A stretch of DNA of 64,000 nucleotides from Paragordius varius. Its lineage: Eukaryota; Animalia; Nematomorpha. Shown here one piece after another: positions 38,271 through 64,000 of this stretch; position 1 is the first letter of the stretch, and each line of letters opens with the position of its first letter. The stretch is from contig OZ176057.1 of the NCBI GenBank assembly GCA_964247055.1, forward strand, positions 5,146,001 to 5,210,000, in the 5' to 3' direction. The translations under genes and the position numbers were made by a program. The notes beneath the pieces were generated by a model, which worked only from the letters and a program-made list of their open reading frames with translations, was not told the DNA's origin and did not search any database.

Positions 38271-38953
38271 TCACACTCCATTATTTTTGGATATTGAGTA
38301 AAATTTGGATAAAATTTCAGATTCTTTAGCAGACATTGTTTGAAAGTCTTGATCGGTTTTGTGATCGTAACCCATTAAATGACATATTCCGTGCACCAAA
38401 ATAATCTAAATAGTGATATATACTGAATATATTAATATAGAGGAAAAATGCCATAATTAATAATTAGATAGGAAGATAATTCAATAAATTAATTAGTGTA
38501 TTTAAGCTTTTGGTAAAAAGAATTGGGATATTTTTTTAGTCCCTAATTAAATAAGTCATTTTTAATACCATACATTTAAATTGAAATGAAAGTTATCGGC
38601 ACTTTGTTCGGCAATATATTGAGGTGAAATAAATAAATCTCCCAGATCGTTTTCGTTTGCATCCTATTTTATATATGAAGATCTAAAACTTTAAAAAATG
38701 GAAAACTTAATATATCCGTTGGCGCGTCAACATTACGGTATTTTTTGTTGAGAAGTTGAATACGGTCATTATCTAAAAAAATTACAGAAAGATCTCTCTT
38801 CTCAATAGAAGCAGCTTTTCGTATGTTAAATATATTTTCAGTAATTAATTTCAAATTTAATTGAACAATTTTTTGAGCATTTTTAATAAATAAAGGCATG
38901 AGCCATGCTTCAATTCGATATCCAGGTGATATATGAATGAATTTTGCTAACAT
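38271..38953 (-). CDS. YBEY: Endoribonuclease YbeY (UPF0054), 3 exons
   Basis: Exons 38953-38690, 38663-38574, 38405-38271. Motifs MPLFIKN..., IQLLNKKYRNVDAPTDILSFPF, LGDLFIS, HGICHLMGYDH. Start may be 38953 or 38899. Confidence 0.9.
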
Positions 38954-42009: not shown

Positions 42010-43870
42010 GGGCCTGCTGAATAAAAGCTAGTATATACTAAAAACTAGGTTTTTTCCAGTATACTAGCTATGTATTGAATAAAAAATATATTGCTTTTAC
42101 TATCCAGTACGTACTATGTTTACCAGTATTTACTGACAAATATCATTGAATAAAAATTGTTTTACAAATTTTACCCAGTACTTACTGGTTTTTTTAAGCT
42201 GGTAAATGGCAACATTTTAAACTATTATTTTTTCACTTAAAATAATACGGTTATATTTTTATAAAATTTCTAAGATAAATGTCTTTTTAAATTACATGAT
42301 TCAGATATATATATATATATATATGTATATAAACTTATTAATATATTAATTAAATATTATTTGTTTTATTATTAGAAATAATTTTTTTCCATCTCTATTT
42401 TAAGCTTTGTGAGTTCAATTTGCAGAGATTAATACTTTTGTTAAAAAATATTGGTTTTTTTCAAGAATGTCCACAATCATCATTTTCTTCGATTATTTCA
42501 TTTTTGTGTAAAATATTTGATTTTATATACTTTATAATGACCTTAATTTTATTTTTTAAACATTTAAATTTTATATATTTGAGTGAATATTTTTGAATGA
42601 AGCTATTTTCTATATAAAAAACCACCGATTTATTCAAATTCGAGTTATGACTAAGATAAAATGACCTTTTCATATTTTGGTTAAAAATTAAATATATCTT
42701 TAAGGAAACTAACTCCCAGGATGCAAATGTAGGTATTTATAATATCATAAATCTAGATTTTGTGTTAAGATTTCTTGGAGATCCGGGATATCAAGCGTGT
42801 ATAGGACATGATTTTAATGTTTATAGTTCCACAATATGCAAAACTATACCTAAAGTTATGGACGAAATAGTATCAAAATCTTATTGGGTAAAAATTCCCA
42901 AGTCATTTGAAGAGCTTAATATGGCGAATAAATTATGGCTAGCAAAATATAAAATGCCAACTGCTATTGGTTGCAATGATTGTTCATACTTTGAAATATT
43001 AAGACCTAAAGAAAATGTTGAGGCCTATATAAATAGAAAGGGTCGATGTACCCTCAATGTACAATTCACATGTAATGCCAATGAAGAAATTACATCCGTG
43101 GATGCACAATGGCCAGGATCTGTACATGATTGAAGGATATGGCGAAACACGATTGGTCATATATGTGCAAACAAAATGATTTCTGTTTGTTAGGTGATAA
43201 TGGATATCCACTATCACCCTGGCTCCTAACCCCCTACAAAAATACGATGATCAAAAACGAGAAAAAATTCAATAAATTACATTGTTCTGAAAGAAACATT
43301 ATCGAGCGCGGGTTTTCGGTCAGATGACCCGATTTCCTATACTTTGTAACGAAATTCGTTTAAGTCTAGAACGAATCCCAAAACTTATATTAACATGTTC
43401 CATATTACATAATGTATCCTAATATATTAACGAACCCTTAACAGATTTTGATAGTAATTCATATTTTGATATTGAATATGTGGAGGATTGTGAAGCAAAT
43501 ATTGATCTAACCCAAATACTCAAGGCTGGCAAAATGAAACGAGATTCAATTGTTTAAACATAATTTTGATTTATTTTTTGTGTATTTAGGAATAAATGTG
43601 TATTAATAAATGCATTATTTAAAAATATGGGTAAATAATCGATATTTATTTTAAAGTTAGACTTTCTAATTTTCTTAATGAATTTTTCAAACGCATTTAT
43701 GAATGAAATCGAAAACTAACAAAAAACAAAATGAAAATAAACATTTTACACATACTAAAGACTTAGTACGTACATGATAGTAAGTACCTATTTTTATTCA
43801 ATGTTTTTTCAAACTAGATACTATCAAGCACTTACTACCCAGTAGGTGCTTGTTTTTATTCAGCAGGCCC
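42010..43870 (+). mobile_element. PIF/Harbinger transposon copy 1 (pseudogenised DDE_Tnp_4 transposase)
   Basis: TIR GGGCCTGCTGAATAAAA at both ends; TAA target-site duplication; ORF remnants IGCNDCS...INRKG...LNVQ..C...WPGSVHD*...LLGDNGYPL...ERNIIER. Confidence 0.93.
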
Positions 43871-44156: not shown

Positions 44157-46057
44157 GGGCCTGCTGAATAAAAGCTAGTATATACTAAAAACTAGGTTTT
44201 TTCCAGTATTTACTAGCTATGTATTGAATAAAAAAATATATTGCTTTTACTATCCAGTACGTACTATGTTTACCAGTATTTACTGACAAATATCATTGAA
44301 TAAAAATTGTCTTTTTACAAATTTTACCTAGTACTTACTGGTTTTTTTTAAGCTGGTAAATGGCAACATTTTAAACTACTATTTTTTCACTTAAAATAAT
44401 ATCGGTTATATTTTTATAAATTTCTAAGATAAATGTTTTTTTAAATTACATGATTCATATATATATATATATATATATAAACTTATTAATATATTAATTA
44501 AATATTATTAGTTTTATTATTAGTAATAATTTTTTTCCTTCTCTATTTTAAGCTTTGTGAGTTCAATTTGCAGAGAATAATACTTTTGTTAAAAAATATT
44601 GGTTTTTTTTTCAAGAATGTCCACAATATCATTTTCTTCTATTATTTCATTTTTGTGTAAAATATTTGAGTTTATACACTTTATAATGACCTTAATTTTA
44701 TTTTATAAACATTTAAATTTTATATATTTAAGTAAATATTTTTGAATGAAGCTATTTTCTATATAAAAAACCACCGATTTATTCAAATTTGAGTTATGAC
44801 TAAGATAAAATGACCTCTTCATATTTAGTATAGGTTAAAAATTATATATATCTTTAATTTAAAGTCTTTCATTTGGAGTATTTATATCATCCATAATGAT
44901 CGAGTTAATATGATATAATTTGTATTGATATTTGGTATATATTTTGTGAATTATGAATTTAACCCTCGAATTTATTATATAAAAACAATGAACAATTCAC
45001 ATGAAATGCCAATGAAGAAATTACATCCATGGATGCACAATGGCCAAGATCTGTACATGATTCAAGGATATGGCGAAACACGATTGTTCCGTCATATATG
45101 TGCAAACAAAATGATTTCTGTTTGTTAGGTGATAATGGATTTCCACTATCACCCTGGCTCCAAACCCCCTTAAAAAATACGATGATCGATAACGATAAAA
45201 AATTCAATAAATTACATTGTTCTGAAAAAAGCATTATCGAGCGGGTTTTCGGTCAGATGAAGGCCCGATTTCCCATACTCGGTAACAAAATTCGTATAAG
45301 TCTAAAACGAATACCAAAACTTATATTAACATGTTCCATATTACATAATGTCAAATATATTAACGAAGCTCTAACAGATTTTTATAATAATTCATATTTT
45401 GAGATTGAATATGTGGAGGATTGAGAAGCAAACATTGAAACCCAAATACTCATGTCTGGCAAAATAAAACGATAGATTCAATTGATCAAATATTATTTTG
45501 ATTTATTTTTTGTATATTTATGAATAGTTGCATTCGTACTCGGTAACAAAATTCGTATAAGTCTAAAACGAATACCAAAACTTATATTAACATGTTCCAT
45601 ATTACATAATGTCAAATATATTAACGAAGCTCTAACAGATTTTTATAATAATTCATATTTTGATATTGAATATGTGGAGGATTGAGAAGCAAACATTGGA
45701 ACCCAAATACTCATGTCTGGCAAAATAAAACGATAGATTCAATTGATCAAATATTATTTTGATTTATTTTTTGTATATTTATGAATAGTTGCATTATTTA
45801 AGAAAATGGGTAGATAATCGATATTTAATTTTCCAAAAGTTACTTTCTATTTTCATATGAATTTTTAAAACGCATTTTATGAATGAAATCGAAAACTAAC
45901 AAAAAAACAAAATGAAAATAAACATTTTACACATACTAAAGACTTAAGTACGTACATGATAGTAAGTACCTATTTTTATTCAATGTTTTTTCAAAAACTG
46001 GTACATACTATCAAGCACCTACTACCCAGTAGGTGCTTGTTTTTATTCAGCAGGCCC
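44157..46057 (+). mobile_element. PIF/Harbinger transposon copy 2 (internally deleted, with ~260-bp internal tandem duplication)
   Basis: Same TIR; TAT target-site duplication; WPRSVHDSRIW...LLGDNGFPL...IIERVFGQMKARF; 45276-45534 repeated at 45537-45793. Confidence 0.92.
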
Positions 46058-47760: not shown

Positions 47761-49865
47761 AGTAATGTTACCAGATAGGCTGTTTTTCGCAGTACAGTAC
47801 TGGATTTTCAGAAAAAATCGTATGTACTGCGGCCTTTTTTGTACTGCTTTTGGATATTGAAAACAATTATTTTTTTTATAAATATATATAAATAACTTTT
47901 TATTTATTCAAAAAAATATTATATTTTAAGTGCCCGTAAAGATAACCCCATAATTTGTAAAGAAATAGTTATTTTGCGGTAAAAACTAAGATTGGCCTAT
48001 TTCTAATTGGTTAATATTTTTTCTGCTCGAATTATACATAATATCAGTCTAACCGCTTAAGTTCGCGCTGCGAAACTAATCTCGGACTCCACCTAAAGAT
48101 TCAGGCTAATGGCCCTTTACTCAGGGCTTCCGCAAAAAGAGGGCCTTAAAATTAAAAAATAACAAAATTAATTCATGATATTTTGATGAATGTTTGATCA
48201 ATTTTATAAAGTTCATTTTTTGTTATATCCCGTAACTATTATTTCAAATATATTATATATGGCTGCGAAATAACCTTTTTTTTTTTCGTATTAAAAAATT
48301 AAGAGTTTTTACGTTTTTCATACTCATTAAGAGGGAGGTATGATATTTTTTAATTTTTTTCCTAAACTTTAATTTTTATTAGTTTTTTTATTTTTTTGCA
48401 TAAACGAATTTTTGTTGAGGCTTACTTCAAACTATTTTGAAATGATTGAAACGGTACGCTTTAAAATATAATAAAACTCTTATTTGAATAATTCGTTGAT
48501 ATTAAATATTATAGGTGGAGATTTTTAAATTAAAGGTTTGTTTTCTTGCGAATTTGGCTGAATTTTAGTCAAACTACACAATTTTTATTTAACATAAATT
48601 TGAAAGCGATCCAATATTTTAATCAAAATTCTGAGTGAAAAAAACGTTTAGCATTATCGTATATATAAATGGTATCCAACCGTTTGTATCATTACCATCA
48701 TGCTCAAAAAAGTATGTACGCTTCAACAAAATTTTTTTAAAAATTTATATTTAGTCGACTAAATTTAGCATATATTTAAAATTATTGTGCACAATGTAGG
48801 AAATTTGCATTTATTTTAGAAACAATTCATTTTAAAAGAGCCAAAAAATTTGGGACTTCCAGAGCCCACACCTAAAAATTACCAAAAGCACCATGATACT
48901 GGATATTTTTTGTGGAAACTGTGTAATATATTACATAGATGGTGTAAAACAGGGAAAGCATGTCTTGATTTTGTACTGAGTCAAAGTTCAAAATAACTGG
49001 TCACATTATCCTATAGCGAATCATATGGATATGACCGCGCGAATCACTGATATCATATAATGTAATAATAATTTCTGTAGTTTACAAGATATTTTAATGA
49101 TTTATAGAATGAAGCTGGAACTTTCACCAATGAAAATTTTTTAAAAAAATGCGCAAATTCATTTTCTGGTATAGAGCACTTGCCACAAATGATATATTTT
49201 AGTATCAGAATATATATATTCTATCAGGTAATTTTTCGTGGATGCTGTGTTAGAAAAATAAAACTTATATTTTTTACACTTTTTTAACTTCTACAATATG
49301 GAATTCTAGCTCCATGATAAAAGCCAACATTTAATAATATCTTCCAAGTAAATAATTATTTATAATTCAAAAAATATAAATTTAAACTACGTTTAAAATC
49401 GAGGGGTATAAGATATAAATTTTTACTGATAAGAAAGTGTCATTTTAGCTGTAACGCTATTGCTCAAAAAGCTAGGTATAAATAAATTCATACCACAATT
49501 AAAGAATAATTGATAAGAATTTAAAAAGATGGATGTGATGCAACCGATTAATAGGTGTATCAGCTTAAACAAATTTATTAAAATTATTTATCATTTTATA
49601 ACAAATCCATATGAATGTAAAATAACCCAGAAACCCATTAATATTATATTTATAAAAAGCATCTCAAAATTCATCTTTTATTTGCAGTCTTTTCGGAAGT
49701 CGAAAGGCTTGATGTTCCCAACTCAAAACCTTGCCAATCCTACACTTTTGAGTACCGCTTATCTGAATTAAAGGCGTATTTTTAACCTAAAAAATATGCA
49801 CAATGTTAAGCAATGTCCAGATTGCATTGAAAAGAATTTTTTTATAAAAATGAATATATTTTAAC

Positions 49866-50333
49866 CGCATAATTCTTAGAATCAATATTTAGCAAATCTT
49901 TTTGGATAGTGGCCTGCTCAAATATAATATCAATGTTTTCGCTTATCACTGGCAGAAATACATTTGGATCTTTTTCGATATCTTCCCTAATAGATCACAA
50001 CATAATTTAGGTTATAAGACGAAAATAAATATTTGAATGAAACTAAATACTTGCAGGAATCGTAATCCATGATGTTTTTATATAACATCTCCAAATTCTA
50101 AATAAGGTAATAATAAAATTAGGATATACACTTAGTTTGTGACCGCTTTTATAAAGACATTAGTCAATATAATTAATCATATTATGAAATAATTGATTAT
50201 TTTAAACTTAAATTTGAGGCAAAATTGTAAAATCGATCGATTTCAAAATCATCGGCTGTTAAAAAGGATATAAGCTTATTTGAGATTAAGACCGGATTTT
50301 AAACCGGTAATCTGGTATTTAACAATAAGTTAA

Positions 50334-50375
<42 letters not shown>

Positions 50376-53300
50376 GAGCACTGAGAGGTTTACCATGAAC
50401 TAATAAAATAATTTCAATTATTATTCTATCCACATTTTAATCAAAAGATTTTTTAATCATACCTTCGATTTCTAGATAATATATAAATATTTATTATTTA
50501 GATTAAATCATAAACAGTGAGTCGTAATTAATATATCTTACCAGGCAAAGGGTCATCTAGTTTACAAAATATATAATATAAATGTTGTTTAATCAATATC
50601 ATTAATTTACTTACCAGGTATATATTTAAAACAAATGTTTTCATCAACATTTACTCCTATGTAAGAATAATCTTCAATCTTTTCCAAATCAAATTCCTTC
50701 TCGAATTTTTTGGGCACTTTCTCAAATGGTATCGTTGTAAGGTTTTTATTATTGTGTTTTATCGTAATTTCCGAAATGGCGCACAAATTTTTTAGTGTGG
50801 CCGAAACTAAGACTTTCTTATCACTAATTCTTGAGACATAACACCTTACATCTCCTAAAAACGCAATTACCAATGAAAGTAAGTAAAAACAACGATTACT
50901 AAAGTTTGAATTAATTATTATTATTATACCTTTTGTGTCGCACTCTAAATTAGTTAGTAATAATCAGGAGTGTAATTCATGCTTAATAAATAATGTATTA
51001 TCTACTTCATACCTGGGATCAAAATATTATAGGTCGAATTTTGATCTTTTGCTGTGTTTTCAGCAAAGACAGTTATCGTCTTTGTGTCTTCATGGGAAGT
51101 TGCGCGTTCATAAGTAAAATCCAAATTGGTGTCATCCTTATTAATGGCAGGAGTATAAAAAGTATTATTGGGGAATGAAATTTTTATCATTCCAACATTT
51201 TTTAGGTCCAAAGATATTGGGATTTGACGATCCAAATGATTTCCCATCTTCTTCAATGTAAGGGACAAAACTACTATAATGGTTTTATTTGAAAAATATA
51301 TATTTTTATAAAAATGTGAACCAATTACTACCACTAATCTATCAATGGCATATTTGTTTTCTAGCATTGTGTTAATTAGTGTAAAACATATATATATTAT
51401 ATATATATATATTATGGCTAAATTTTAGACAAAATTTATAAACCAAGCATAATCGCACTCTGATTATTGATGATAGGAAAGAAACTATTCTACTGGAAAA
51501 CACCCCGAAAAATAATATACCAATTGCATTGGCTTTAATGGGTGAGCTTTCCTTAAATCTTCCATTTCGCGTAGCTTCTACTTTGAAAGTTAGAGCATTA
51601 TGGTTGCCAAGTCTAAGGTATGTGAATTGTTGGTTTTGGATCACCAAATTTTGTGTGTTATATTTGTCTCCTTCCTTCAATAAGAGGGAATATTGGTTGT
51701 CCGAATTGTAATTAGTCACTTCAATTGAGACAACATTTTTGTCATTTGCTTCAATATTCAAACTCGGCTGGACCAATGTCGGTTCTGCATTTATAAACAT
51801 TTGTACGTAAATAAATTTGAAAGTAAGCAGAAAAAACATTTAATTATTTGTTTAATTTAAACTATTGAACAAGCTTCTACATCTCAACAATATATGAATT
51901 CCATGATAAAAAACGGTTTTCCTTTGGCAGAAAGTCATTCGCCAAGCCATTTTTCTACGTCTTTGAAATTATTAAAGTTCTGCGGGATCCCCCATTGTGT
52001 AATTAATATTCAGATGGCGCCAGGTCAAGAGATACAAATTTCTAATGTAAGATGAAGTATGGTCATGAGGCAGATGACTTTACCAATCTTTTAGCCAATT
52101 CAAGTTGTTTTTCAATCAATGCATATTATAAAATGTGTTAGTCAGATGGCGCCAGGGCAATACTTTCATTGGTTTTGTAGCGGGAAACAATGTATTGTCA
52201 TGTAGCGATAGTCACAATGACAATGGTTTCATTACTAATAAGACGTAGTCCAATAGTGTTTTAGGGTTGACTAAATATCTACTTATGTCATTTTTTGCGC
52301 ATAATTTTTAAATCTAACTCAATTTTTTGACCAAACTAAACTTTTAACTAACTTAAATGCTAATTATTTATAAGCAATTCTATATCTTAATTATAGATTT
52401 AATGAAATATAAAAAAAAGTTAATTTAAGTTAAATAGAAAAGTGTTGATTTAAATGTTAAAGTTCATAAATAATGTTACGAATAAGTTATAGGCGATTTT
52501 ATAATAAAACCTCTTATGCATGTTTCAAACTATAACATACTCATTGTCTTAACGGTACTGAGTTCCTTTGTACATTATTATTCCGCTGAACTTTTAGTTA
52601 AAGTTATAGCAGAGTCTGATAGGTGATTTTTTAATTTGTTTTAAATTATAACATACCGATTGCCTCAGCAGTAATTGAGCTCTCAAGTGATTGATGACCT
52701 CGATGAATTTCCACCTTAAAAGATATTTTAGAGTTTTTTCCATTTCTGGAATATGTAAATTGTTTGGATGGAAAGTCTTGTGGTGAGGTAAAGTCTAATG
52801 ATTCTCCTTCTTTACTATAGAGAGTATAATCGCACCCCGAATAGAAATTCTTCACTTCAAGTATAACTTCATTCTCGTCATTCTTTATAATTGTTAAAAT
52901 AGGGTGTTCCAACTTCTCTCCTAATAGTTTTAGGAGAAATATGTTTATATATGTAGAATTCATTAATACAATAAAATGCAAAAATTTCAGATAAAAAACC
53001 AAATTTAATTTGGCACAACTATCGCTATTTTTAATCTCACTAAGTACCCTTTTAAACATAAAATTTAACGTATATATTATTCACCGAGCGAATTATATTT
53101 GTTTAACGCTTTACCTAATAAAGTAAAGCGATTTCGAATTGTACAGTAAAAATTCTAAATCAAAAATTAAAGACAAATATTTTTAAAATGACAACCATGC
53201 TTTTTAAAACCTTGAATTCTATACAAGAATTTTAATATAAACACTTTCCATAGAAACTAAATATCCAATGATATATACATATATAGGTATGTATATATGA

Positions 53301-56300
53301 TAATTAATTCTAGAATAACATGGTGCTATTGGTTTTACCCTTTGCGAATTATTTAAGAAAGGTATTTACACTTTTGTGGTTAGTGCTCCATATAAAAAAG
53401 ACAAAATTTACACATTTTGTGAAATACTTTTTTGGTTAAATTTAAATGCTTCATTCCAAAAAATACCACTTAACATATAAAAAGCGAAATGTTATTCCAA
53501 ATTAGGATTTAGAATATAAAGATCCAAAATTTTTGGACCCGTAAAAAATAGGCAAATCCTATTAGATTATATCAGAAGGGCCGAAATCGCACGATAAAAT
53601 TTTTTACGCTAAATTTTGACATGAAAAAAGGTTTTTTTCGAAAAAGAGATCTGCTAAAAAATTATATTTCGATGTTAAAGGTTTCTACACCTCAGAATTT
53701 TAATGGTTTTATCTTTTAAATTTGGGCAAATATAATTAAAGAACAATATATCTAGAATAAATTTGGAGAAGAACGAATTTTTAATCAACATTCTGAGATG
53801 ATAGAAAGTTTTAGCATCATCGAATATATTTAAAAAAATATTGTTTTGCTTTTTGAATAAAGCAAATTATAGTTTTTAATAACATTAATACGGTTAGATT
53901 TTACCGAAAATTTTTAGTCAAACAAAATGTGTGCGCTATTTTTGCATTTTACGATATCGAGCATTAAGCATAGAAAGGGAAAATAACTTTCTTGTACCAG
54001 TAGGTATTCATACAAATTTAATCAGAATATATATAGATTGTATCATAATAATTTTTATACCCACCGATTTTGGACGCAATGTATGGAATACGTATGTCAA
54101 TTTAATCTATTTGTTTATTATTTCGTAGCTTAATTAATAGTTATATTTAAAATTAATTAAGCAAAAAAAATATGGTTGTTTTTTTTAAAAAATATTTGTC
54201 TCTTAGCTTTTACCATACCATATTACATAAAATTCGGGGTATAAAAACCTGATGAAATATATATACGCTTGTATCATAATTATACTATAATTTTGACGAG
54301 AGATTAAGATAATTTTGTGCTTATTGCTCTACATGGCAAATTATCCTGCAATGTGTTATGTCAATTTTCTTTGGTCAAAGAATGTATCATGCCAAAATAC
54401 ATCATGAACTATATAAAGCAAAATAATATTATCATTATAAATTTTAAGTTGTGAGATGAGGCCTTGATCATGTCAAATTTTTAGTCTATTATGAACAGAG
54501 CTAGATTTTAAAAATAAACACAAAAATGTCGTTTCGCGATAATATTTTTTATATGGCAGATTATGGCATCAAAAAAATATTTGTATAAAAATTTAATTTT
54601 AGCAAAATTTTGTGCGCACTCTACCCTATTTTGAAGCATGATAAAACGGTAATAATAATTTTTATATGTAATCATGTGATGCTCAACATCTCTATTACCA
54701 AACTTTAATATCCAAATATATTTTAAGTATAAGTTGGGTTCATTAACTAACCCAATTTGGAAAGGATACTAATACTTAAAAAAAATTTCGAAGTTATAGA
54801 TCGGCACATCGAATTATGCAAAAAAGTATTTACAAAATTTCTTAAGCATTTATACCGTTCCATCAAACTTCAAAATAGCATGAAGTGCGTATCAACAAAA
54901 TTTTGCTATAAATCTTTGATTAAAGTATGCATTTTTTCAAAAATTTTATATGGATGTCATTGTTTAGCATGCTTTAAAGATTTTCATCGTAACTCTGCAT
55001 TTGCGAGTTCATTTAAAGAGATCTGGTCTATTCATGGGCAAAAGCTGAGAAGAGTTGCAGTGTCAAAATTAAAAGTTCATAAAAATTTTGTGCTTTTTGA
55101 ATATATAGTGTGTGATATATATTAATGACATTTTTAGGTTGAAGGGTTTAGATTTCACCCAAAATTTTAGCATGTAAGAAATTTGCTATTTTTGATATGG
55201 ACCAAATACCACAAAAGTGTAAATAAATTTCTTAAATGACTAATAAACTCCAAAACCAAAAACACCATAGTGTCTAGAATATATAAGTATATTTCATGTG
55301 TGCACTGAGTGTAATTTTAATTCGTAAATTCTAATAGAGTATTTTGATGCCATTTTGGCTTTTGATCAGGGAGGGATTTGAACTATGAAAAACATGGATA
55401 AAAAAATTACCACATTGATCTATATATAATAAATATATGTTGAAGTTTTTGTAAGAATGATAAGTTACTTTCTGCTTGTTACCAATTATCAAAAAAAAAT
55501 TTTTGTTTTATAGGGCTTATATCATTTTTAAACAATTATATAAATATGTGAATTGATCGATAGTATAATAGAGAGTTGATTGAATTTGAAGCCCAGTTCA
55601 ATTTTTTAGCGTCTATTCTTGTAAGTTTTTTAAGCACCTTCGATAAAAATATAATTTTATTTTCAATTTTTTGCCTTTTTTATGATAACAAATAAAAATA
55701 TAGTGTATATGTTCAATTATATTATTTTGATTATTTATCATTTTAACAATCATTATGGTGAAGCTTTTAGTTACAGAATGAAATATTAAATTAGTATTTA
55801 TTTTTTGGAATTCATTTTCGCCGCACATTGATATAAGTTATATTGAAAATATAAAGATCATAAATTAGATTTTTTATATAAAAAACTAATTAATATTCTT
55901 ATGTTGTTTTTATTTCCATGCCTTAGGACTTTTTAAACTCAATGTAAATTATATATACCTGGTATGGTTTCGCCCTCTAATGATATAAATTGAAATTATG
56001 ATGGCGAACCATTTTAAAATGAAATTAAAGTATAAACATAAGCCAAATGCGAATCAACTATTTTTTATTGTTCAATAATAATTAGAATTATCATTTAACG
56101 ATATTTATAAAGAATATTTTAAAAAACTGCCCTATTATTTGGTTGTCAATTTGATATGGTATTATTTTTCTTATACCCTATGAATATTAGCCACAAAAAT
56201 ACACATTAAATTATACGAAAAAAACATATTTTATTATTCAAAAAATATTATTAAATGCTAAAAATATTTTGTTGAAACCGTTATAGAACACGGGATTCTT

Positions 56301-59300
56301 GTGAATTTTATTATCTATGTAACAATCATCCAATTAGAGCATATCTTTAACTTTAAAAGTTACAACTATTTGGGCCCGTTGTAATCCGTAAATTTTAATG
56401 TGTTTAATATTTTTAAACAAAATTTAGCAAATTCTTTAAAATAATTTGGATTATTGAAAAATTTGTTGGTGGCATTTGTGACGCTTTACTAGCAAGTCTC
56501 TAAGTTATATTTTACTTTATACATGTATAAACTGAGTATTAGTTTAATTCTAATATTTTTTATAAAAAACTATATAATTTGAATATTTTCCACCTTATAT
56601 ATATCGTAACGCCCAAATTTTTTCCAAAAATTTTAATTGTCATAATTTACATAATACGTGTATTCAAATAAAATACGTGAGACCATGGAAAAAGCAAAAA
56701 TATTGGAAAAATGTTTTTTCAAAATAACTTTAGGCATTAAAAATTGGAATGTTAAATAATTTGAATGTGAATATACCCAGTGGTGCTGGTTGCTGCGTAG
56801 ATTCAGGTGGTTTAGTTGTTGAAGCTAAACATATATTTTTATAGTTTTGAGGCAGTCAAAAAGTTTGAGGTGTATATTTACAGTAAAAATTGAAATTATA
56901 CGGACAAAACGTAAAAATATAAAAACTAACACATTTTTCTATCAATAACCATACTTAAATTTTGATTATATAAGTAATTATTTTAAACTCAATATAAAAT
57001 ACCGGGTGTCAGTATCAAATTAATATATATCATTTAATTCATTTTTTATGAAAATTCAATTAGATATGAAAGTAACCTAATTCACATACCGTTTGCGTGA
57101 ATCCATATATTACAACAGCACATATAATTAAAAAAATTCCTTCTGAATAAAGTTTAGACGATGGGTTTAAAATTTTCTTATTAACACATAAAATTCAAAG
57201 CCAAAAAATTCCGTTTAGTAGATATATGAAAGAAAATATATAATATATTTGTGATCAAAAATTAATATTATTTTATTAAAATTTTCATATTTAAATGATA
57301 CTAGAATTTCATAAAATAAATATTTTCAACATTTTATAATTTTGTTTAAGTAGTAAAAAATAGGTCCTAAAATACCCGAGTTTTAATTTAGAATACGACA
57401 TATTTAACTAATTTAAGCCTTTAGTTATATTAGTTTTACATCATAATATTATTTCAGACAAAAATATTTATCAGATATTATTTTGTAAATAGAATTCGGG
57501 TACTTATAATTTTTTTAAAAATAGTTGTAATGCCGGGAATCAAATTTTTATGTTCTTTGTGTGATTGCATGATCTTATGTTTTGATAAATTTATTTATTG
57601 GCCAAATATAATATATTTAGCGTTTAAAAGTTTCACATTTATAAAATCAGTAGGATGTCAATAAATTAAGAGCAAAACAAGAATACCAATTAATTTCCTG
57701 AAATTTAATTTTTTTTCCCGATCAAATAATAATATCCTGAAATGGGTAAAATATTAAAAATGACCCGTAATTATACATGACATGAGCTAAAATCTATATA
57801 ACCCTTTTAAATTGTCCCTAAACTGTGGTAAAATATTAGACTCATATTTTTAAGTTATCCAATTTACAAAATCTGTGATGACAGAAATGTTTTTCAGACA
57901 TTTTTAAATCTGAATATTTCATATTGATGATACTGAAAAAAAATATATGTCTATCATATCGACAGTTTCGACAAAAATTCTGATGATATATATATATATG
58001 TATCCTGAAATGATATCAAGAATTTTATGGAGATTTTGATATTGCTCTTTCGAATAATTCAAAGCTATCACTTTTGTGGCAGCTCTTTATATTAGAAAAT
58101 GGCAATTAGCGCACATTTCAAATTTAAAATAATGGGTTCTCATGAAAATCACTAAAATATATTATTAAATATAAAAAGAACGATTACAAAATGTTAATTT
58201 TCAGATGCGTCTCCGATAGTCCCAATTCTTTTTCCCTTTTAAAATAGGCCTTTTTTAAAATAAATGCAAAAATGTCGAGATTTTGCTATAAAAATTTTTT
58301 ATGATACATCAAAAAAATATTTTTTTAAAAATTTAATTTTAGCGAAATTTTGTGCCCACTGCGCATCAACAATTTCGCTATAAATTTTTGATCAAAATAG
58401 GCATTTTTTCAAAAATAATTTATATGGATGTCATTGTTTAGCATGCTTTGAAGAATTTCATAAGTGACTCGGCATTTGCGAGTTCATTTTATGAGATTTG
58501 GTCCATTCATGGGCAAAAGCTGAGAAGAGTTGCAGTGTCAAAATTAAAAGTTCATAAAAATTTTGTGCTTTTTGAATATATAGTGTGTGATATATATTGA
58601 TGACATTTTTTGGTTGAAGGGTTTAGATTTCACCCAATAAAAATTTAGCATGTAAGAAATTTTGCTATTTTTGATATGGACCAAATACCACAAACGTGTA
58701 AATAAATTTCTTAAATGACTGATAAACTCCAAAACCAAAGTGTCTAAATATATAAGTATTTCATTAAATATTTTATTTATCATTTTAACAATCATTATGC
58801 TGAAGCTTTTAGTTACAGAATGAAATATTAAATTAGCATTTATTTTTTGGACCTCATTTTCGCCGCTAATTGATATAAGTTATATTGAAAATATAAAGAT
58901 CATAAATTAGATTTTTTATATAAAAAACTAATTATTATTCTTATGTTGTTTTTATTTCCATTCCTTAGGACTTTTTAAACTCAATGTAAATTATATATAC
59001 CTGGTATGGATTCGCCCTCTAATGATATAAATTGAAATTATGATGGCGAACCATTTTAAAATGAAATTAAAGAATAAACATAAGCCAAATGCGAATTAAC
59101 TATTTTTTATATTTCATGAATAATTAAAATTATCATTTAACGATATTTATAAAGAATATTTTAAAAAACTGCCCTATTATTTGGTTGTCAATTTGATATG
59201 GTATTATTTTTCTTATACCCTGTGAATAATAGCCACAAAAATACACATTAAATTATACGGAAAAAAACATATTTTATTATTTAAAAAATATTATTTAATG

Positions 59301-61218
59301 CTAAAAAAATTTTGTTGGAACCGTTATAGAACCCAGGTTTCTTGTCAAAAACCTTATTATCTATGTTAAATTTTAAAATGCAATCATTCGATTAGAGCAC
59401 ATCTTTAACTTTAAAAGTTACAACTTGGGCCCGTTGTAATCCGTAAATTTTAATGTGTAAATATTTTTAAACAAAATTTAGCAAATTTATTAAAATAATT
59501 TGGATTATTGAAAAATCCTTTGTGACGCTTTACTAGCACTCTAAGTTATATTTTACTTTATACATGTATAAACTGAGTATTAGTTTAATTCTTAATATTT
59601 TTTATAAAAAACTATATAATTTGAATATTTTCCACCTTATATATATATCGTAACGCCCAAATTTTTTCCAAAAATTTTAATTGTCATAATTTATATAATA
59701 CGTGTATCTCAAATAAAATACGTGAGACCATGGAAAAAGCAAAAAAAATTGGAAAAATGTTTTTTCAAAATTTAAACTTTAGGCATTAAAAATTGGAATG
59801 TTAAATAATTTGAATGTGAATATACCCAGTGATGCTGGTTGCTGCGTAGATTCAGGTGGTTTAGTTGTTGAATCTAAACATATATTTTTATAGTTTTGAG
59901 GCAGTCAAAAAGTTTGAGGTGTATATTTACAGTAAAAATTGAAATTATACGGACAAAACGTAAAAATATAAAAAAAAACACATTTTTCTATCAATAACCA
60001 TACTTAAATTTTGATTATATAAATAATTATTTTAAACTCAATATAAAATACCGGGTGTAAATATGTGACACAATCTGTGTATTACACTATTGTTTGTAGG
60101 ATTATAGATAAAAAAAGTATGGTTGTTTTAAAAAAATTGTCTATAGATATTTTCATTTTGTCCGTATGATTTCATTTTTAAGTGTAAGTTTTGGCCATAT
60201 CTATATATATATATATATATATACCATTAAAACTCAAACTCACCCTTAAACCCTAATTTCCCCTCTCGAACAATTTAAATTTATCCTATAAACATTTCAT
60301 AATAATTATTAAGTCTATATTCGAGGGTTTAATGTTCCAATGGTGAATGTGGTACATGTACAAATATATTATTTATGGAAGTATCCCCACTGTTATTATT
60401 TCGAGTATAATTTTCATAAAATTAAATAATAAGGTAGCAAGTTTCGTTATACATGAATCTTCATAAATATTTAAGATAATAAAATGAATCCTCCAAAATG
60501 AATTCCCCTATAATTTAAAAGGAGCTTCTAAATAGCTTTATTGAAAATTAATTAGCATTTCGAATCATTTAAGGCATAAACATTAAGTTTTAAACATTAT
60601 TTCATGTAATTTAGATTATTAAAAGAGGGATGGTCCATTTTATATGGATTAGTAATTTAGGGATGAATTTATGCTACAAAATTTTGCGGTAATATACACT
60701 TAGAAGAATATAATTTATTGTAAAAATATTTTGTTTAAACAATGATATCTAACATATCTTTATAAATAATGCGGCGACATCACGAGAATTGTCATTCAAT
60801 TCTTTTTATATACCAGTATCAAATTAATATATATATATTTACATTTAATTCATTTTTTATGAAAATTCAATTGGATTTTATGAAAGTAACCTAATTCACA
60901 TCCCGTTTGCGCGAATCCATATATTACAAAAGCACATGATATTAAAAAATTCCTTGTGAATAAAGTTTAGACGATGGGTTTAAAATTTTCTTATTAACAC
61001 ATAAAATTCAAAACCAAAAAAATTCCGTTTAGTAGATATATGAAAGAAAATATAATAATATATTTGTGATCAAAAATTAATATTATTTTATTAAAATTTT
61101 AATATTCAAATGATGCTAGAATTTCATAAAATAAATATTTTCAAATCATTTTATAATTTTGTTAAAGTAGTAAAAAATAGGTCCTCAAATACTCGAGTTT
61201 TAATTTAGAATACGACAT
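49866..61218 (-). CDS. Uncharacterised secreted/surface protein built from micro-exons and FN3-like beta-sandwich exons (3' end unresolved)
   Basis: Proposed exons: 61218-61193, 60952-60891, 59873-59826, 59018-59001, 56824-56777, 55976-55959, 53114-53085, 52920-52657, 51784-51521, 51360-51013, 50854-50615, 50556-50542, 50399-50374, 50097-50051, 49986-49866. All GT-AG and phase-compatible; 1575 nt = 525 codons without a stop. N-terminus MSYSKLKLENFLISCAFVIYGFAQTGC is signal-peptide-like; several NxS/T sequons. Confidence 0.6.
50615..50854 (-). CDS. Cys-containing beta-rich exon (240 nt, phase 1-1)
   Basis: GDVRCYVSRIS...LKNLCAISEITIKHNN...ENICFKYIPG|gtaag. Confidence 0.65.
51013..51360 (-). 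CDS. Beta-rich extracellular-type exon (348 nt, phase 1-1)
   Basis: Open frame between tag acceptor and gtatg donor; NKT, NNT and NST sequons. Confidence 0.65.
51521..51784 (-). CDS. FN3-like repeat exon 2 (264 nt, phase 1-1)
   Basis: PTLVQPSLNIEANDKNVVSIEVTNY...YSLLLKEG...QFTYLRLGNHNALTFKVEATRNG...ESSPIKANAIG; same length and phase as exon 52657-52920. Confidence 0.75.
52657..52920 (-). CDS. FN3-like repeat exon 1 (264 nt, phase 1-1)
   Basis: EKLEHPILTIIKNDENEVILEVKNF...YTLYSKEG...QFTYSRNGKNSKISFKVEIHRG...ESSITAEAIG; homologous to the exon at 51521-51784. Confidence 0.75.
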
Positions 61219-61772
61219 ATTTTATTAATTTAAGCCTTTAGTTATATAAGTTTTACATCCTAATATTATTTCAGACAAAAATATTTATCAGATATTATTT
61301 AGTAAATAGAATTCGGGTACTTAATAATTCTATAAAAATAGTTGTAATGCCGGGAATCAAATTTTTATGTTCTTTGTGTAATCGCACGATCTTATGTTTT
61401 GATAAATTTATTTATAAAGATAATATATTTAGCGTTCAAAAGTTTCACATTTATAAAATCAGTAGGATGTTAATAAATTAAGAGCAAAACAAGAATACCA
61501 ATTAATTTCATGAAATTTAAATTTTTTTTCCGATCAAATAATAACATCCTGAAATGGGTAAAATATTAAAATGACTTACACATAAGCTAAAATTTATATT
61601 AACCTTTTTGAAGATTTGTTTGTCCCTAACTGTGATAAAGTATTTAACTCCTATCTTTAAGTTATTAAATTTACAAAATCTGTAATGTTTTTCACACATT
61701 TTTAAATTTGAATGAATAATATCGATGATACTAAAAAATACATGTGTATTATATCGACAGTTTTGACAAAAG
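54525..61772. repeat. Tandem segmental duplication (~3.5-kb units: about 54525-57980 and 58265-61772)
   Basis: Long near-identical direct repeats (e.g. 55720-57000 vs 58765-60055; 57005-57980 vs 60813-61772), with a ~430-bp copy-1-only and a ~750-bp copy-2-only insert. Confidence 0.9.
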
Positions 61773-62164
61773 TCCGGGCCACCCTTAATTCTAGATGCAC
61801 ACAATGGCGTCTCTTCTGCGTACTTTTTGCCGACATCTTATCTTAGTTATGCCCGTTACACAAAGAACCTTATCGGAAAAAATAATAATGCTTATTGATT
61901 CAATCTTACCACATAGGAAATATTTGTTTATCATATAAAAAATAACCTTATAATTTTCATATGCTACAGTTTTAATTGGCTAACCATATTTTATCAAATT
62001 AAATTTGCTGCCAATTAATATAAATTCTATTTTAGCTGTAATATGGATTAGCAACAAATTTGATGTGATTAATCCTAACCGGTCCAACCTTTTTGTATGG
62101 TATGAAAAATTTCGATAAAAATGTATTTAACAAAATTGAAATATAAATTAGGTATCCTAATGTA

Positions 62165-63315
62165 TAAATAATATATATGTATCATTTTGTGCAAAAAAAT
62201 GTTAACATTATTTTTCATGAGATATTCTGACCAGCTTATTAAAATTTTTTATTTGTTTACGACCTAGTGAAAATCGAAATCGGGCAAAAAGTGAAAAATA
62301 AGAATATTAAGGAGGATTCAAAAAATTATAATAAAGTTGAGATATTATGGTTTACTATCATTTAAGCAGATATCAATATATAAATAGTCTAAAATTATTA
62401 ATTTATAAAATCTCAGTTAAAAAGATGGCGTTTTTCTTTTTACACACTTAAAAGGCAATTTTTAATCTCTATTAAAATAATTTTTTTAAATTATAAACCA
62501 GCTAACTATTATTAAAATCTTAAGATTCATATTTAAAAAATAACTTCTATAACAAAATAAACTGAAAATTATTTTTTTTTATCTTAAATTAATGTCATTT
62601 GGTTTGTGATTGTATAAAAATCTACTGTCTTAGTTTAAAGTTTCTCAATTTTAAAGTATATAAAATAATACAAAATGAAATTTACAAGTAGTGAAAAAAA
62701 CACCAAAAATCCCTACATATCCCAGTAAAAATATTAATTTGTATTAAAACAAACTTGTTACTTTTGATATTCCAATACTTTTAAATTCGCATAAATATTC
62801 TTGATAATTCCCACTCATATAAGATTCCCAATAAAACAGTATATTTTTCTCTAATCATAAACCAGATGACAAAAAAATTAAAAACTAAATGCAAATATTT
62901 TTCAGTTTTTTTTGTTATAGAAGGTTTTTACTTAATTAAATGTTTTAATAGTGAAGTTAGTAAATATTTAAAAAATATTTTAATAAAGTTTCATAAATTT
63001 TTTTGACTTTTAAGTGTGTTAGAAACCTTTGAACTAAGAAATATTGAAACCCTATGATTTTAGGCTATTTATATATAAAAATTATCTCCTAAAATGATAT
63101 AAAACCATAATTTCTCAACTTTTATCAATATTTTTTGAATTATCCTTGATTATCCTTTGTAATTTTGCCGAATTTTTCGATTTTCTCTTAATATTTCAAA
63201 AACTAGGTCTACAAAATTAAAATTTTTGCGGAAAATCAATTCACTGGTCATAAGCTATCTCATGAAAAAACAATTTTTGTTAAAAAAATTAATCCTCTTT
63301 TTTGCACACAGTGTT
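62165..63315. mobile_element. ~1.15-kb element with long imperfect TIRs (related fragment at ~3410-3560)
   Basis: CATGAGATATTCTGACCAG...AAAGTTGAGATATTATGGTTTT versus AAAACCATAATTTCTCAACTTT...CTGGTCATAAGCTATCTCATG. Confidence 0.6.
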
Positions 63316-63366
63316 ATGTATCTTTATTTAATAAAAATAAAAAAATTTAAAAATATTTTCTGATAC

Positions 63367-63417
63367 TTGATGATGATTGCGATTGAGCGGCTTCAGGTTG
63401 TGAAGTTGCTAATGTTT
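63367..63417 (-). CDS. Isolated 51-nt phase 1-1 Ser/Thr/Gln-rich micro-exon
   Basis: tatag|(E)TLATSQPEAAQSQSSS|gtatc; GC-richer island resembling the STTKPPESTQQPAPLG exons. Confidence 0.5.
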
Positions 63418-64000
63418 CTATAATTAATATGAATTAAAATTTTATGACATTGGTGAACACATATCACTGTACGACATTTTTGGAATTATTTGGCATTTTT
63501 GAGAAATTATTCAAATTATTATTTATTTATTCGAACAAGCGAATATCATATTAATTATTTTAGCGAGAAAGCCATACTATATTAAAATATATACTATAAT
63601 GTTCTTTACAGAAATATTGCTTGGTTTAATCTCACGGATTAAACAAAATAATTAGATATTCCGTTTAAATGCCGATGTCCGAATTTCAATTCGATACATT
63701 AAGGGGAATAAAATTTGAATTTTATTTGGTTAAAGACACATTTTCTGCACACATTTACCCTAAAAATCTCTGCAGCCGTCTATATAATAGTCAAAATTCA
63801 AATCAAATTTTATAATTTCTAATCTAGAAAATATGATAAAATAAGTGATGAATTTCAATATGATGTTTATAAATAATTATTAAGAGATGAATTATGTTTT
63901 AGGAGGCAGCTATTTTACAGAGAGCACGAAACACCAAAATATTTATAAATTTACATAGGCTAGAACTTATCAAAATATTAATGATATTACATATTATTTG

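Follow-up and report, generated by a model that had tools for sequence, protein, structure and literature searches.

A minus-strand gene of Paragordius varius that probably joins one-exon beta-sandwich modules through small linker exons

Introduction

Are exons of only 15 to 51 nucleotides (nt) real when they appear as open AG..GT frames in AT-rich DNA, and to what kind of gene would they belong? This question is raised by a locus on contig OZ176057.1 of the Paragordius varius genome. The window, that is the whole stretch of DNA analysed, comprises 64,000 nt (contig positions 5,146,001 to 5,210,000). A sequence-only reading had flagged positions 49866-61218 of the window as a micro-exon gene: a chain of tiny frame-preserving exons that starts with a signal-peptide-like sequence, feeds FN3-like modules and resembles the micro-exon genes of schistosomes. 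We examined this stretch and also read 40 kb past the window end. Coordinates above 64000 extend the window numbering, and adding 5,146,000 gives the contig position. Genome-wide searches covered the 110.6-Mb assembly with its 44 contigs.

The answer that we favour, and that we consider probable though well short of certain, is that the flagged stretch forms the 3′ half of one long minus-strand modular gene with small linker exons. The gene is best read as a classic class 1-1 modular design, thus a gene of a known kind, whose domain family is without relatives. Below, we describe the exon chain on which this reading is built, and we weigh three other explanations against it where the relevant evidence is presented.

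An open exon chain on the minus strand

All of the tiny exons listed in the sequence-only reading are present on the minus strand with the phases given there. By direct reading, every exon is preceded by AG and followed by GT, and all junction codons are sense codons. The four larger phase 1-1 exons, here called L1 to L4, join the chain in frame as had been claimed, and the chain is open from 59873 down to a TAA at 49842 (Table 1). Since the exons mostly end in G, the junction codons are G-initial. The GC content of the DNA around the flagged stretch is 23-28%, and this composition and the invertebrate-type repeats set the window clearly apart from human DNA. L1 to L4 each remain open over 79-87 codons despite 24% GC, and the small exons reach 46-56% GC in the same DNA. 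Symmetry was found for six of the eight micro-exons; the 26- and 47-nt exons are asymmetric and restore the frame only jointly, leading into the last exon. Exons of at most 51 nt contribute 250 of the 1,424 coding nucleotides of this stretch (18%), and those of at most 36 nt contribute 107 nt (7.5%). A multi-exon gene that is invisible to open reading frame (ORF) finding, as had been proposed, is supported by these observations and looks real.

The boundaries proposed for the gene did not hold, as exons continue upstream beyond the window to about 77.5 kb. This upstream part contains further domain exons (U1 to U3″) and two families of 51-nt linker exons (A and B). Together with the flagged exons they form a chain of 24 exons from 77507 to 49842, which is open over its 3,089 nt and contains only sense codons at its junctions. 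L2 resembles U2 and U2′, and a profile of L1, L2, U2 and U2′ gave four matches in the whole genome, all of them these same exons. The two halves thus share a private domain family, and this is the main reason why we read them as one gene.

The same chain could be divided into two tandem paralogous genes. In that case the upstream gene would end soon after linker exon B′, the downstream gene with L1 to L4 and the tail would start at an unrecognised exon in the 53-62 kb interval, and the 48- and 18-nt cassettes would belong to one or the other. Such a division could fall in the 3.5-kb intron between 63367 and 59873, which carries repeat copies with about 90 genome matches; moreover, reading through the donor at 63367 leads to a stop after six codons, making termination possible there. 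However, the chain is frame-compatible throughout, both halves carry the same private domain family, and the upstream half has no recognisable terminal exon. In addition, when 53-62 kb was scanned for hydrophobic exons that begin with ATG and leave in phase 1, unique sequence yielded none. We therefore consider two genes unlikely and continue with a single gene.

The repeat in the 3.5-kb intron extends over approximately 62160-63370. It has at least 90 genome matches with about 70% identity on both strands and is palindromic or foldback-like.

Table 1. Exons and candidate exons of the locus, in window numbering (above 64000 extended), listed in the direction of transcription of the minus strand
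Feature	Position	Strand	Remarks
Domain exon U1	77507-77274	-	phase 1-1
Domain exon U2	75965-75747	-	phase 1-1
Domain exon U3	73916-73671	-	phase 1-1
Linker exon A, 51 nt, three copies	73144, 66003, 64597	-	phase 1-1, Ser/Thr/Pro-rich
Linker exon B, 51 nt	71966-71916	-	phase 1-1, identical to B′
Domain exon U2′	68831-68616	-	phase 1-1
Domain exon U3′	66775-66530	-	phase 1-1
Domain exon U3″	65372-65124	-	phase 1-1
Linker exon B′, 51 nt	63417-63367	-	phase 1-1, Thr/Ser/Gln/Pro/Ala-rich, upstream of the start first claimed
48-nt linker exon, copy a	59873-59826	-	phase 1-1, Ser/Thr/Pro/Gln-rich, GC 46% against a background of 24%
18-nt exon, copy a	59018-59001	-	phase 1-1, donor in the top 0.2% of GT sites
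48-nt linker exon, copy b	56824-56777	-	phase 1-1, two substitutions relative to copy a, both amino-acid-changing
18-nt exon, copy b	55976-55959	-	phase 1-1, one substitution relative to copy a (Ser/Thr)
30-nt candidate exon	53114-53085	-	phase 1-1, at chance level, reading frame open with or without it
Domain exon L1, 264 nt	52920-52657	-	phase 1-1, one complete predicted seven-strand beta-sandwich
Domain exon L2, 264 nt	51784-51521	-	phase 1-1, 42% identity to L1
Domain exon L3, 261 nt	51273-51013	-	phase 1-1, low-confidence all-beta model
Extra 15-nt candidate exon	50930-50944	-	phase 1-1, in the 158-nt L3-L4 intron, absent from the earlier list
Exon L4, 240 nt	50854-50615	-	phase 1-1, 3 Cys, no fold assignment
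15-nt exon	50556-50542	-	phase 1-1, very strong donor
26-nt exon	50399-50374	-	phase 1 to 0, strong donor
47-nt exon	50097-50051	-	phase 0 to 2, marginal support
Candidate terminal exon, 145 nt	49986-49842	-	TAA end, alone at chance level

Small exons compared with the chance background

An open frame between AG and GT is at chance level in this DNA. In 12 kb, the gene strand had 258 open phase 1-1 candidates with AG/GT and the opposite strand 255. An initial ad hoc filter, which combined GC content and consensus sites, gave way to a score that is based on matrices and judged against a null from the control strand. For each candidate, the score was composed of acceptor and donor matrices and of GC content. 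Training of the matrices was limited to exons that were not under test, namely seven domain exons plus two linker exons from the upstream part, and thus to nine sites. For the null, we used three frames of the opposite strand over 73.6 kb. It consisted of 2,933 symmetric candidates, corresponding to 13.3 per kb per frame, and of 8,355 candidates when all length classes were included, as was done for the asymmetric exons.

The 18- and 15-nt exons had no equal among the 2,933 symmetric null candidates, and the 26-nt exon had none among the 8,355 of any length class. The donors of these three exons lie in the top 0.2% among all GT sites. For the 48-nt exon, no null equal was left once its length was also required. 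The 47-nt exon is marginal, with 0.02-0.2 expected per kb by chance, and the 30-nt exon is at chance level. By this score, the exons of 18, 15, 26 and 48 nt stand out from the background, the 47-nt exon is borderline and the 30-nt exon does not stand out. The extra 15-nt candidate between L3 and L4 has 47% GC and a good acceptor and donor, and about 0.1 such candidates are expected by chance in the region.

Composition was compared as well. When the GC islands of 53150-62000 (8.8 kb) are ranked, the 48-nt exons come second and third. We then ranked the AG..GT candidates of 104 kb, approximately 6,900 per strand and of any phase, by their Ser/Thr/Pro/Gln content. The richest candidates on the minus strand were linker A (three copies), linker B (two copies) and the 48-nt exon (two copies). 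These are three unrelated families, all of which are phase 1-1 and all of which are located between domain exons. Taken together, the sequence comparisons support several tiny symmetric exons as better than chance.

A sceptical explanation of the locus holds that only the large exons are real, or that the gene is silent or decaying; the small exons would then be chance AG..GT frames, and L4 could be terminal. The background of about 13 symmetric chance candidates per kb per frame would readily provide such frames, and reading through the L4 donor yields Gly-Lys-stop. Furthermore, no purifying selection is seen in the duplicated small exons, and the product is absent from the library of 1.84 billion proteins that was searched. 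It would nevertheless be hard to explain why three unrelated linker families agree in phase, composition and position between domain exons, why the 18-, 15- and 26-nt exons have donors of such strength, and why the small exons are so much richer in GC than the surrounding DNA. Decay is also at odds with the domain exons, which are still open. We regard this explanation as very improbable and retain the small exons as part of the gene.

Tandem duplications within the locus

The sequence-only reading had reported the 48- and 18-nt exons as occurring twice. Both copies are present, yet they are copies of a single duplication that includes the introns. The duplication consists of two units in tandem, 54886-58359 and 58360-61771, each about 3.5 kb long with the order X-Y-Z and with one 18-nt and one 48-nt exon; their identity, counted with the introns, is 89-94%. 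Because one tandem duplication also copied the introns (93.6% identity over 1.3 kb), the doubled exons provide no independent support for each other. Copy a and copy b differ at 3 of 66 exon sites, each time with a change in the protein, and at 31 of 918 intron sites (p = 0.49). In the 60-nt flanks of the cassettes, 2 of 236 sites differ versus the 3 of 66 in the exons (p = 0.07), which gives a hint of exon-focused change in the 48- and 18-nt cassettes.

Duplication is not restricted to these units. The locus contains nested duplications with units of 1.4, 3.5 and 7-8.5 kb and 89-98.5% identity, and one stretch of 2 kb is 100% identical. Segment Z′, about 0.9 kb at 60814-61771, has three genome copies, all of which are in the locus (57010-57976, 60814-61771 and, in the extended numbering, 69458-70326). 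The domain exons U3′ and U3″ differ by 7.3% (18 substitutions and 3 gap positions) versus 0.75% in the 400 nt downstream. Linkers A and B are identical across their copies. If anything diversifies in this gene, the comparison of these copies suggests that it would be the modules, not the micro-exons.

The fully identical stretch is formed by window positions 62000-64000 and contig positions 5216548-5218549. The match extends over 2,001 nt without a difference, whereas the 4.6-kb duplicate around it has 98.5% identity. It could stem from a duplication of very young age, from gene conversion in the recent past or from an artefact of the assembly.

The divergence between copies bears on the proposal that the small symmetric exons are alternative cassettes, used combinatorially or in a mutually exclusive manner, which would create variant secreted or surface proteins in the schistosome way. 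As six of the eight small exons have symmetric phases, skipping them would not shift the frame. The duplicated 48- and 18-nt exons differ only by amino acid changes while their flanks are nearly unchanged, and a neighbouring duplicated domain exon is about 10 times more divergent than its flank. On the other hand, micro-exons make up only the 18% of coding length given above, and the product would be large and domain-built. Skipping either the 26- or the 47-nt exon alone would break the frame. Linkers A and B are identical between copies and hence not diversified, and the two cassette copies, which differ by just one or two residues, leave little variety possible. Alternative cassettes thus seem unlikely to us, and we favour small exons that would be mostly constitutive linkers.

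Fold and relatives of the modules

Domain and homology searches were run per exon. The AlphaFold2 model of L1, calculated from a four-row alignment, has a predicted local distance difference test score (pLDDT) of 82.8 and seven strands. As the strands fill residues 7-85 of the 87, one exon corresponds to one domain. VIA-align superposed this model on the Ig domain of PECAM and on FN3 domains of tenascin and fibronectin (Z 10.3-9.5; root-mean-square deviation 2.3-2.9; 81-86 of 87 residues aligned). Foldseek gave template modelling (TM) scores up to 0.74 with a best expect value (E) of 2e-3, and its top matches were FN3 domains of cytokine receptors and of sDscam. The predicted fold thus assigns L1 and L2 to the FN3/Ig-type beta-sandwich modules, and the FN3-like character claimed for the 264-nt exon product was borne out.

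In contrast to the fold, the sequence of the modules has no counterpart in the collections searched. Pfam searches with L1 to L4 and the last exon returned sub-threshold noise only, with no family, fn3 (PF00041) and Ig included, at its cut-off or close to it, and the domain profile had no match in a PDB sequence search. HMMER found no credible relative of the L1/L2/U2/U2′ profile among 1.84 billion representative proteins. Its sole match, a bacterial S-layer-homology wall protein with E 9.6e-4, was rejected: hhalign gave 20%, and the matched repeat is without clear Pfam identity. We treat this match as chance or as an analogous beta-sandwich. A genome search for paralogues, which the sequence-only reading had suggested, was run with L1 to L4, the last exon and the 48-nt exon at the level of protein, degenerate pattern and DNA, and it yielded local copies only. 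For L3, L4 and the last exon, the genome contains no second copy.

The ends of the gene

The signal-peptide-like start did not survive closer inspection. The ATG at 61218 opens a frame of 18 codons, the sole GT donors of this frame leave phase 2 by direct reading, and the site lies in triplicated intron DNA; on these grounds we rejected it as a signal peptide. Another candidate start, at 61547, was discarded as it is inside the triplicated segment and has its hydrophobic stretch beyond the donor.

A different candidate first exon is found at 85646-85583 on the minus strand (contig positions 5231583-5231646), some 24 kb further upstream than the start first claimed. Its ATG lies in a good Kozak-like context (AAAATGG), its product has a hydrophobic core, and its donor, gtatgt, is in phase 1. 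After this exon, Ser/Gly/Thr/Pro-rich phase 1-1 candidates of 12-18 nt begin at 85516, 85249, 83988, 82585, 82112, 80843, 79499 and 79168. These candidates, which extend downstream to 79154, partly fall within a tandem duplication of about 3.1 kb. Judged from such candidates, micro-exons may be much more frequent in the 5′ part of the gene than in the flagged stretch. Further along in the extended numbering, 87895-89506 on the minus strand contains broken reverse-transcriptase-like frames, and at 89400-102200 on the plus strand an open frame of 81-89 codons is repeated in a long array.

On the 3′ side, where the DNA is poor in genes, two fragments on the plus strand, 42762-43130 and 45029-45421, match DDE_Tnp_4 of Harbinger-type transposases with E 1e-9 and 2e-21. 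An open frame at 38672-38953 on the minus strand matches the Pfam YbeY endoribonuclease with E 5e-11, and this frame probably belongs to the animal YBEY gene as one of its exons. Since the transposase remnants and the YbeY exon lie beyond the TAA, we place the gene end near 49.8 kb.

Comparison with known gene designs

Class 1-1 modules are known for a phase-1 proto-splice-site and glycine-linker logic and for G-initial junction codons (Patthy; PMC8001218). Mosaic animal proteins of this class, such as the FN3/Ig arrays of matrix, adhesion and muscle proteins, arose by the shuffling and duplication of exons. The gene described here shares with them that each exon carries one mainly-beta module. 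Phase-1 introns at domain borders, G-initial junctions, tandem exon duplication and an FN3/Ig-like fold are further common features. It departs from these proteins in that its domains are without a Pfam FN3 or Ig match and that its linkers are split off as separate tiny exons. Moreover, unlike shuffled class 1-1 modules, the L1/L2/U2 profile matches one gene only, which indicates duplication within the gene and not between genes.

Schistosome micro-exon genes contain 10-20 symmetric exons of 6-81 bp, mostly of about 15 bp, which make up most of the coding sequence, and their products are secreted proteins of fewer than 190 residues behind a signal peptide (10.1101/2023.06.21.545858). Small symmetric exons, long introns, invisibility to ORF finders and, probably, a parasite genome are shared with the gene studied here. 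However, micro-exons provide only 18% of the coding length here, two of the eight are asymmetric, the 240-264-nt domain exons dominate, the product would reach about 1,000 residues, a signal peptide exists only as the candidate at 85646, and no homology was found. The proposed analogy to schistosome micro-exon genes is therefore not supported. A literature search for micro-exon genes in Nematomorpha returned only one incidental paper.

The bicycle genes of aphids encode paired CYC motifs behind a signal peptide and consist almost only of same-phase micro-exons (PMC9168663). Bicycle and megacycle genes have in common with the present gene many small same-phase internal exons, fast evolution and the lack of relatives. 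In contrast to bicycle genes, the exons here encode modules with a predicted beta-sandwich fold. No CYC motif was found in the per-exon translations, which contain 0-3 Cys per exon.

In genes of the titin PEVK, elastin and collagen type, short symmetric exons encode pieces of flexible Pro-rich spacers that lie between folded Ig/FN3 modules, and the number of exons sets the spacer length. The short spacer exons of titin PEVK and elastin would be the nearest functional analogy for the small exons of this locus. Unlike in those genes, the putative stalk here has only about 6-7 such exons, and there is no sequence relation.

Discussion

The single gene that we favour would comprise at least 24 exons and span at least 28 kb, and a length of about 36 kb is possible if the candidate exon at 85646 belongs to it. 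Its product would have about 1,000 residues or more, without detectable relatives. We envisage a protein built as a string of FN3/Ig-like modules of about 80-88 residues, with exactly one phase 1-1 exon per module. Between the modules would lie short Ser/Thr/Pro/Gln-rich linkers, each with its own 48-51-nt phase 1-1 exon, and the products of a few 15-18-nt exons. If splicing proceeds as drawn, the upstream domain block (U) would be connected to modules L1 to L4 of a presumably secreted protein by a flexible and probably O-glycosylated stalk of about 75-85 residues, encoded by the 48- and 18-nt exons and by the 51-nt exons A″ and B′ immediately before them. Phase-1 symmetry is near-universal in the chain, and therefore the duplication of a block of exon plus intron keeps the frame. 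The nested duplications of the locus show the gene growing in this frame-neutral manner.

Several observations weigh against this reading. The putative link between the two halves has to cross an intron of 3.5 kb (63367-59873). For the 30-nt exon, 0.4-1.5 candidates are expected by chance in its interval, and for the terminal exon taken alone, 0.3 per kb per frame, both of which amount to chance level. The matrix test is of low specificity, as the doubted AT-rich hydrophobic candidates at 58743-58696 and 61963-61910 are also without a null equal. The comparison of exon with intron divergence did not reveal purifying selection in the duplicated micro-exons, where the 66 exon sites are too few. 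L3 modelled alone has a low pLDDT of 63.8, with its seven strands placed as in L1. L4 received no fold assignment, with a best ESM Atlas score of 0.87 and low recognition. The signal-peptide candidate at 85646-85583 was judged by eye and is located 8 kb upstream of the first domain exon. Finally, no annotated or transcript-derived product of the gene was found in the 1.84-billion-protein library.

A bolder idea goes further than the structure described above. The 48- and 18-nt cassettes, which are recently duplicated and differ by amino acid changes only, might be variably included and tune the length or sequence of a glycosylated stalk that presents fast-diverging FN3-like modules at the parasite surface, and throughout the genome the flexible parts of secreted proteins might be strings of phase-1 micro-exons. 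We consider this a long shot.

As an illustration of the micro-exon idea the locus is a weak example. Its value lies elsewhere. ORF-based gene finders would miss this gene, and standard gene finders probably would too, so that annotators of this genome can use it to test how exons of 15-51 nt are called. Its growth by tandem exon duplication can be seen under way, and it carries a domain family without a credible relative in 1.84 billion proteins. If the species is parasitic, a rapidly duplicating protein of surface type could bear on the interaction with its host.

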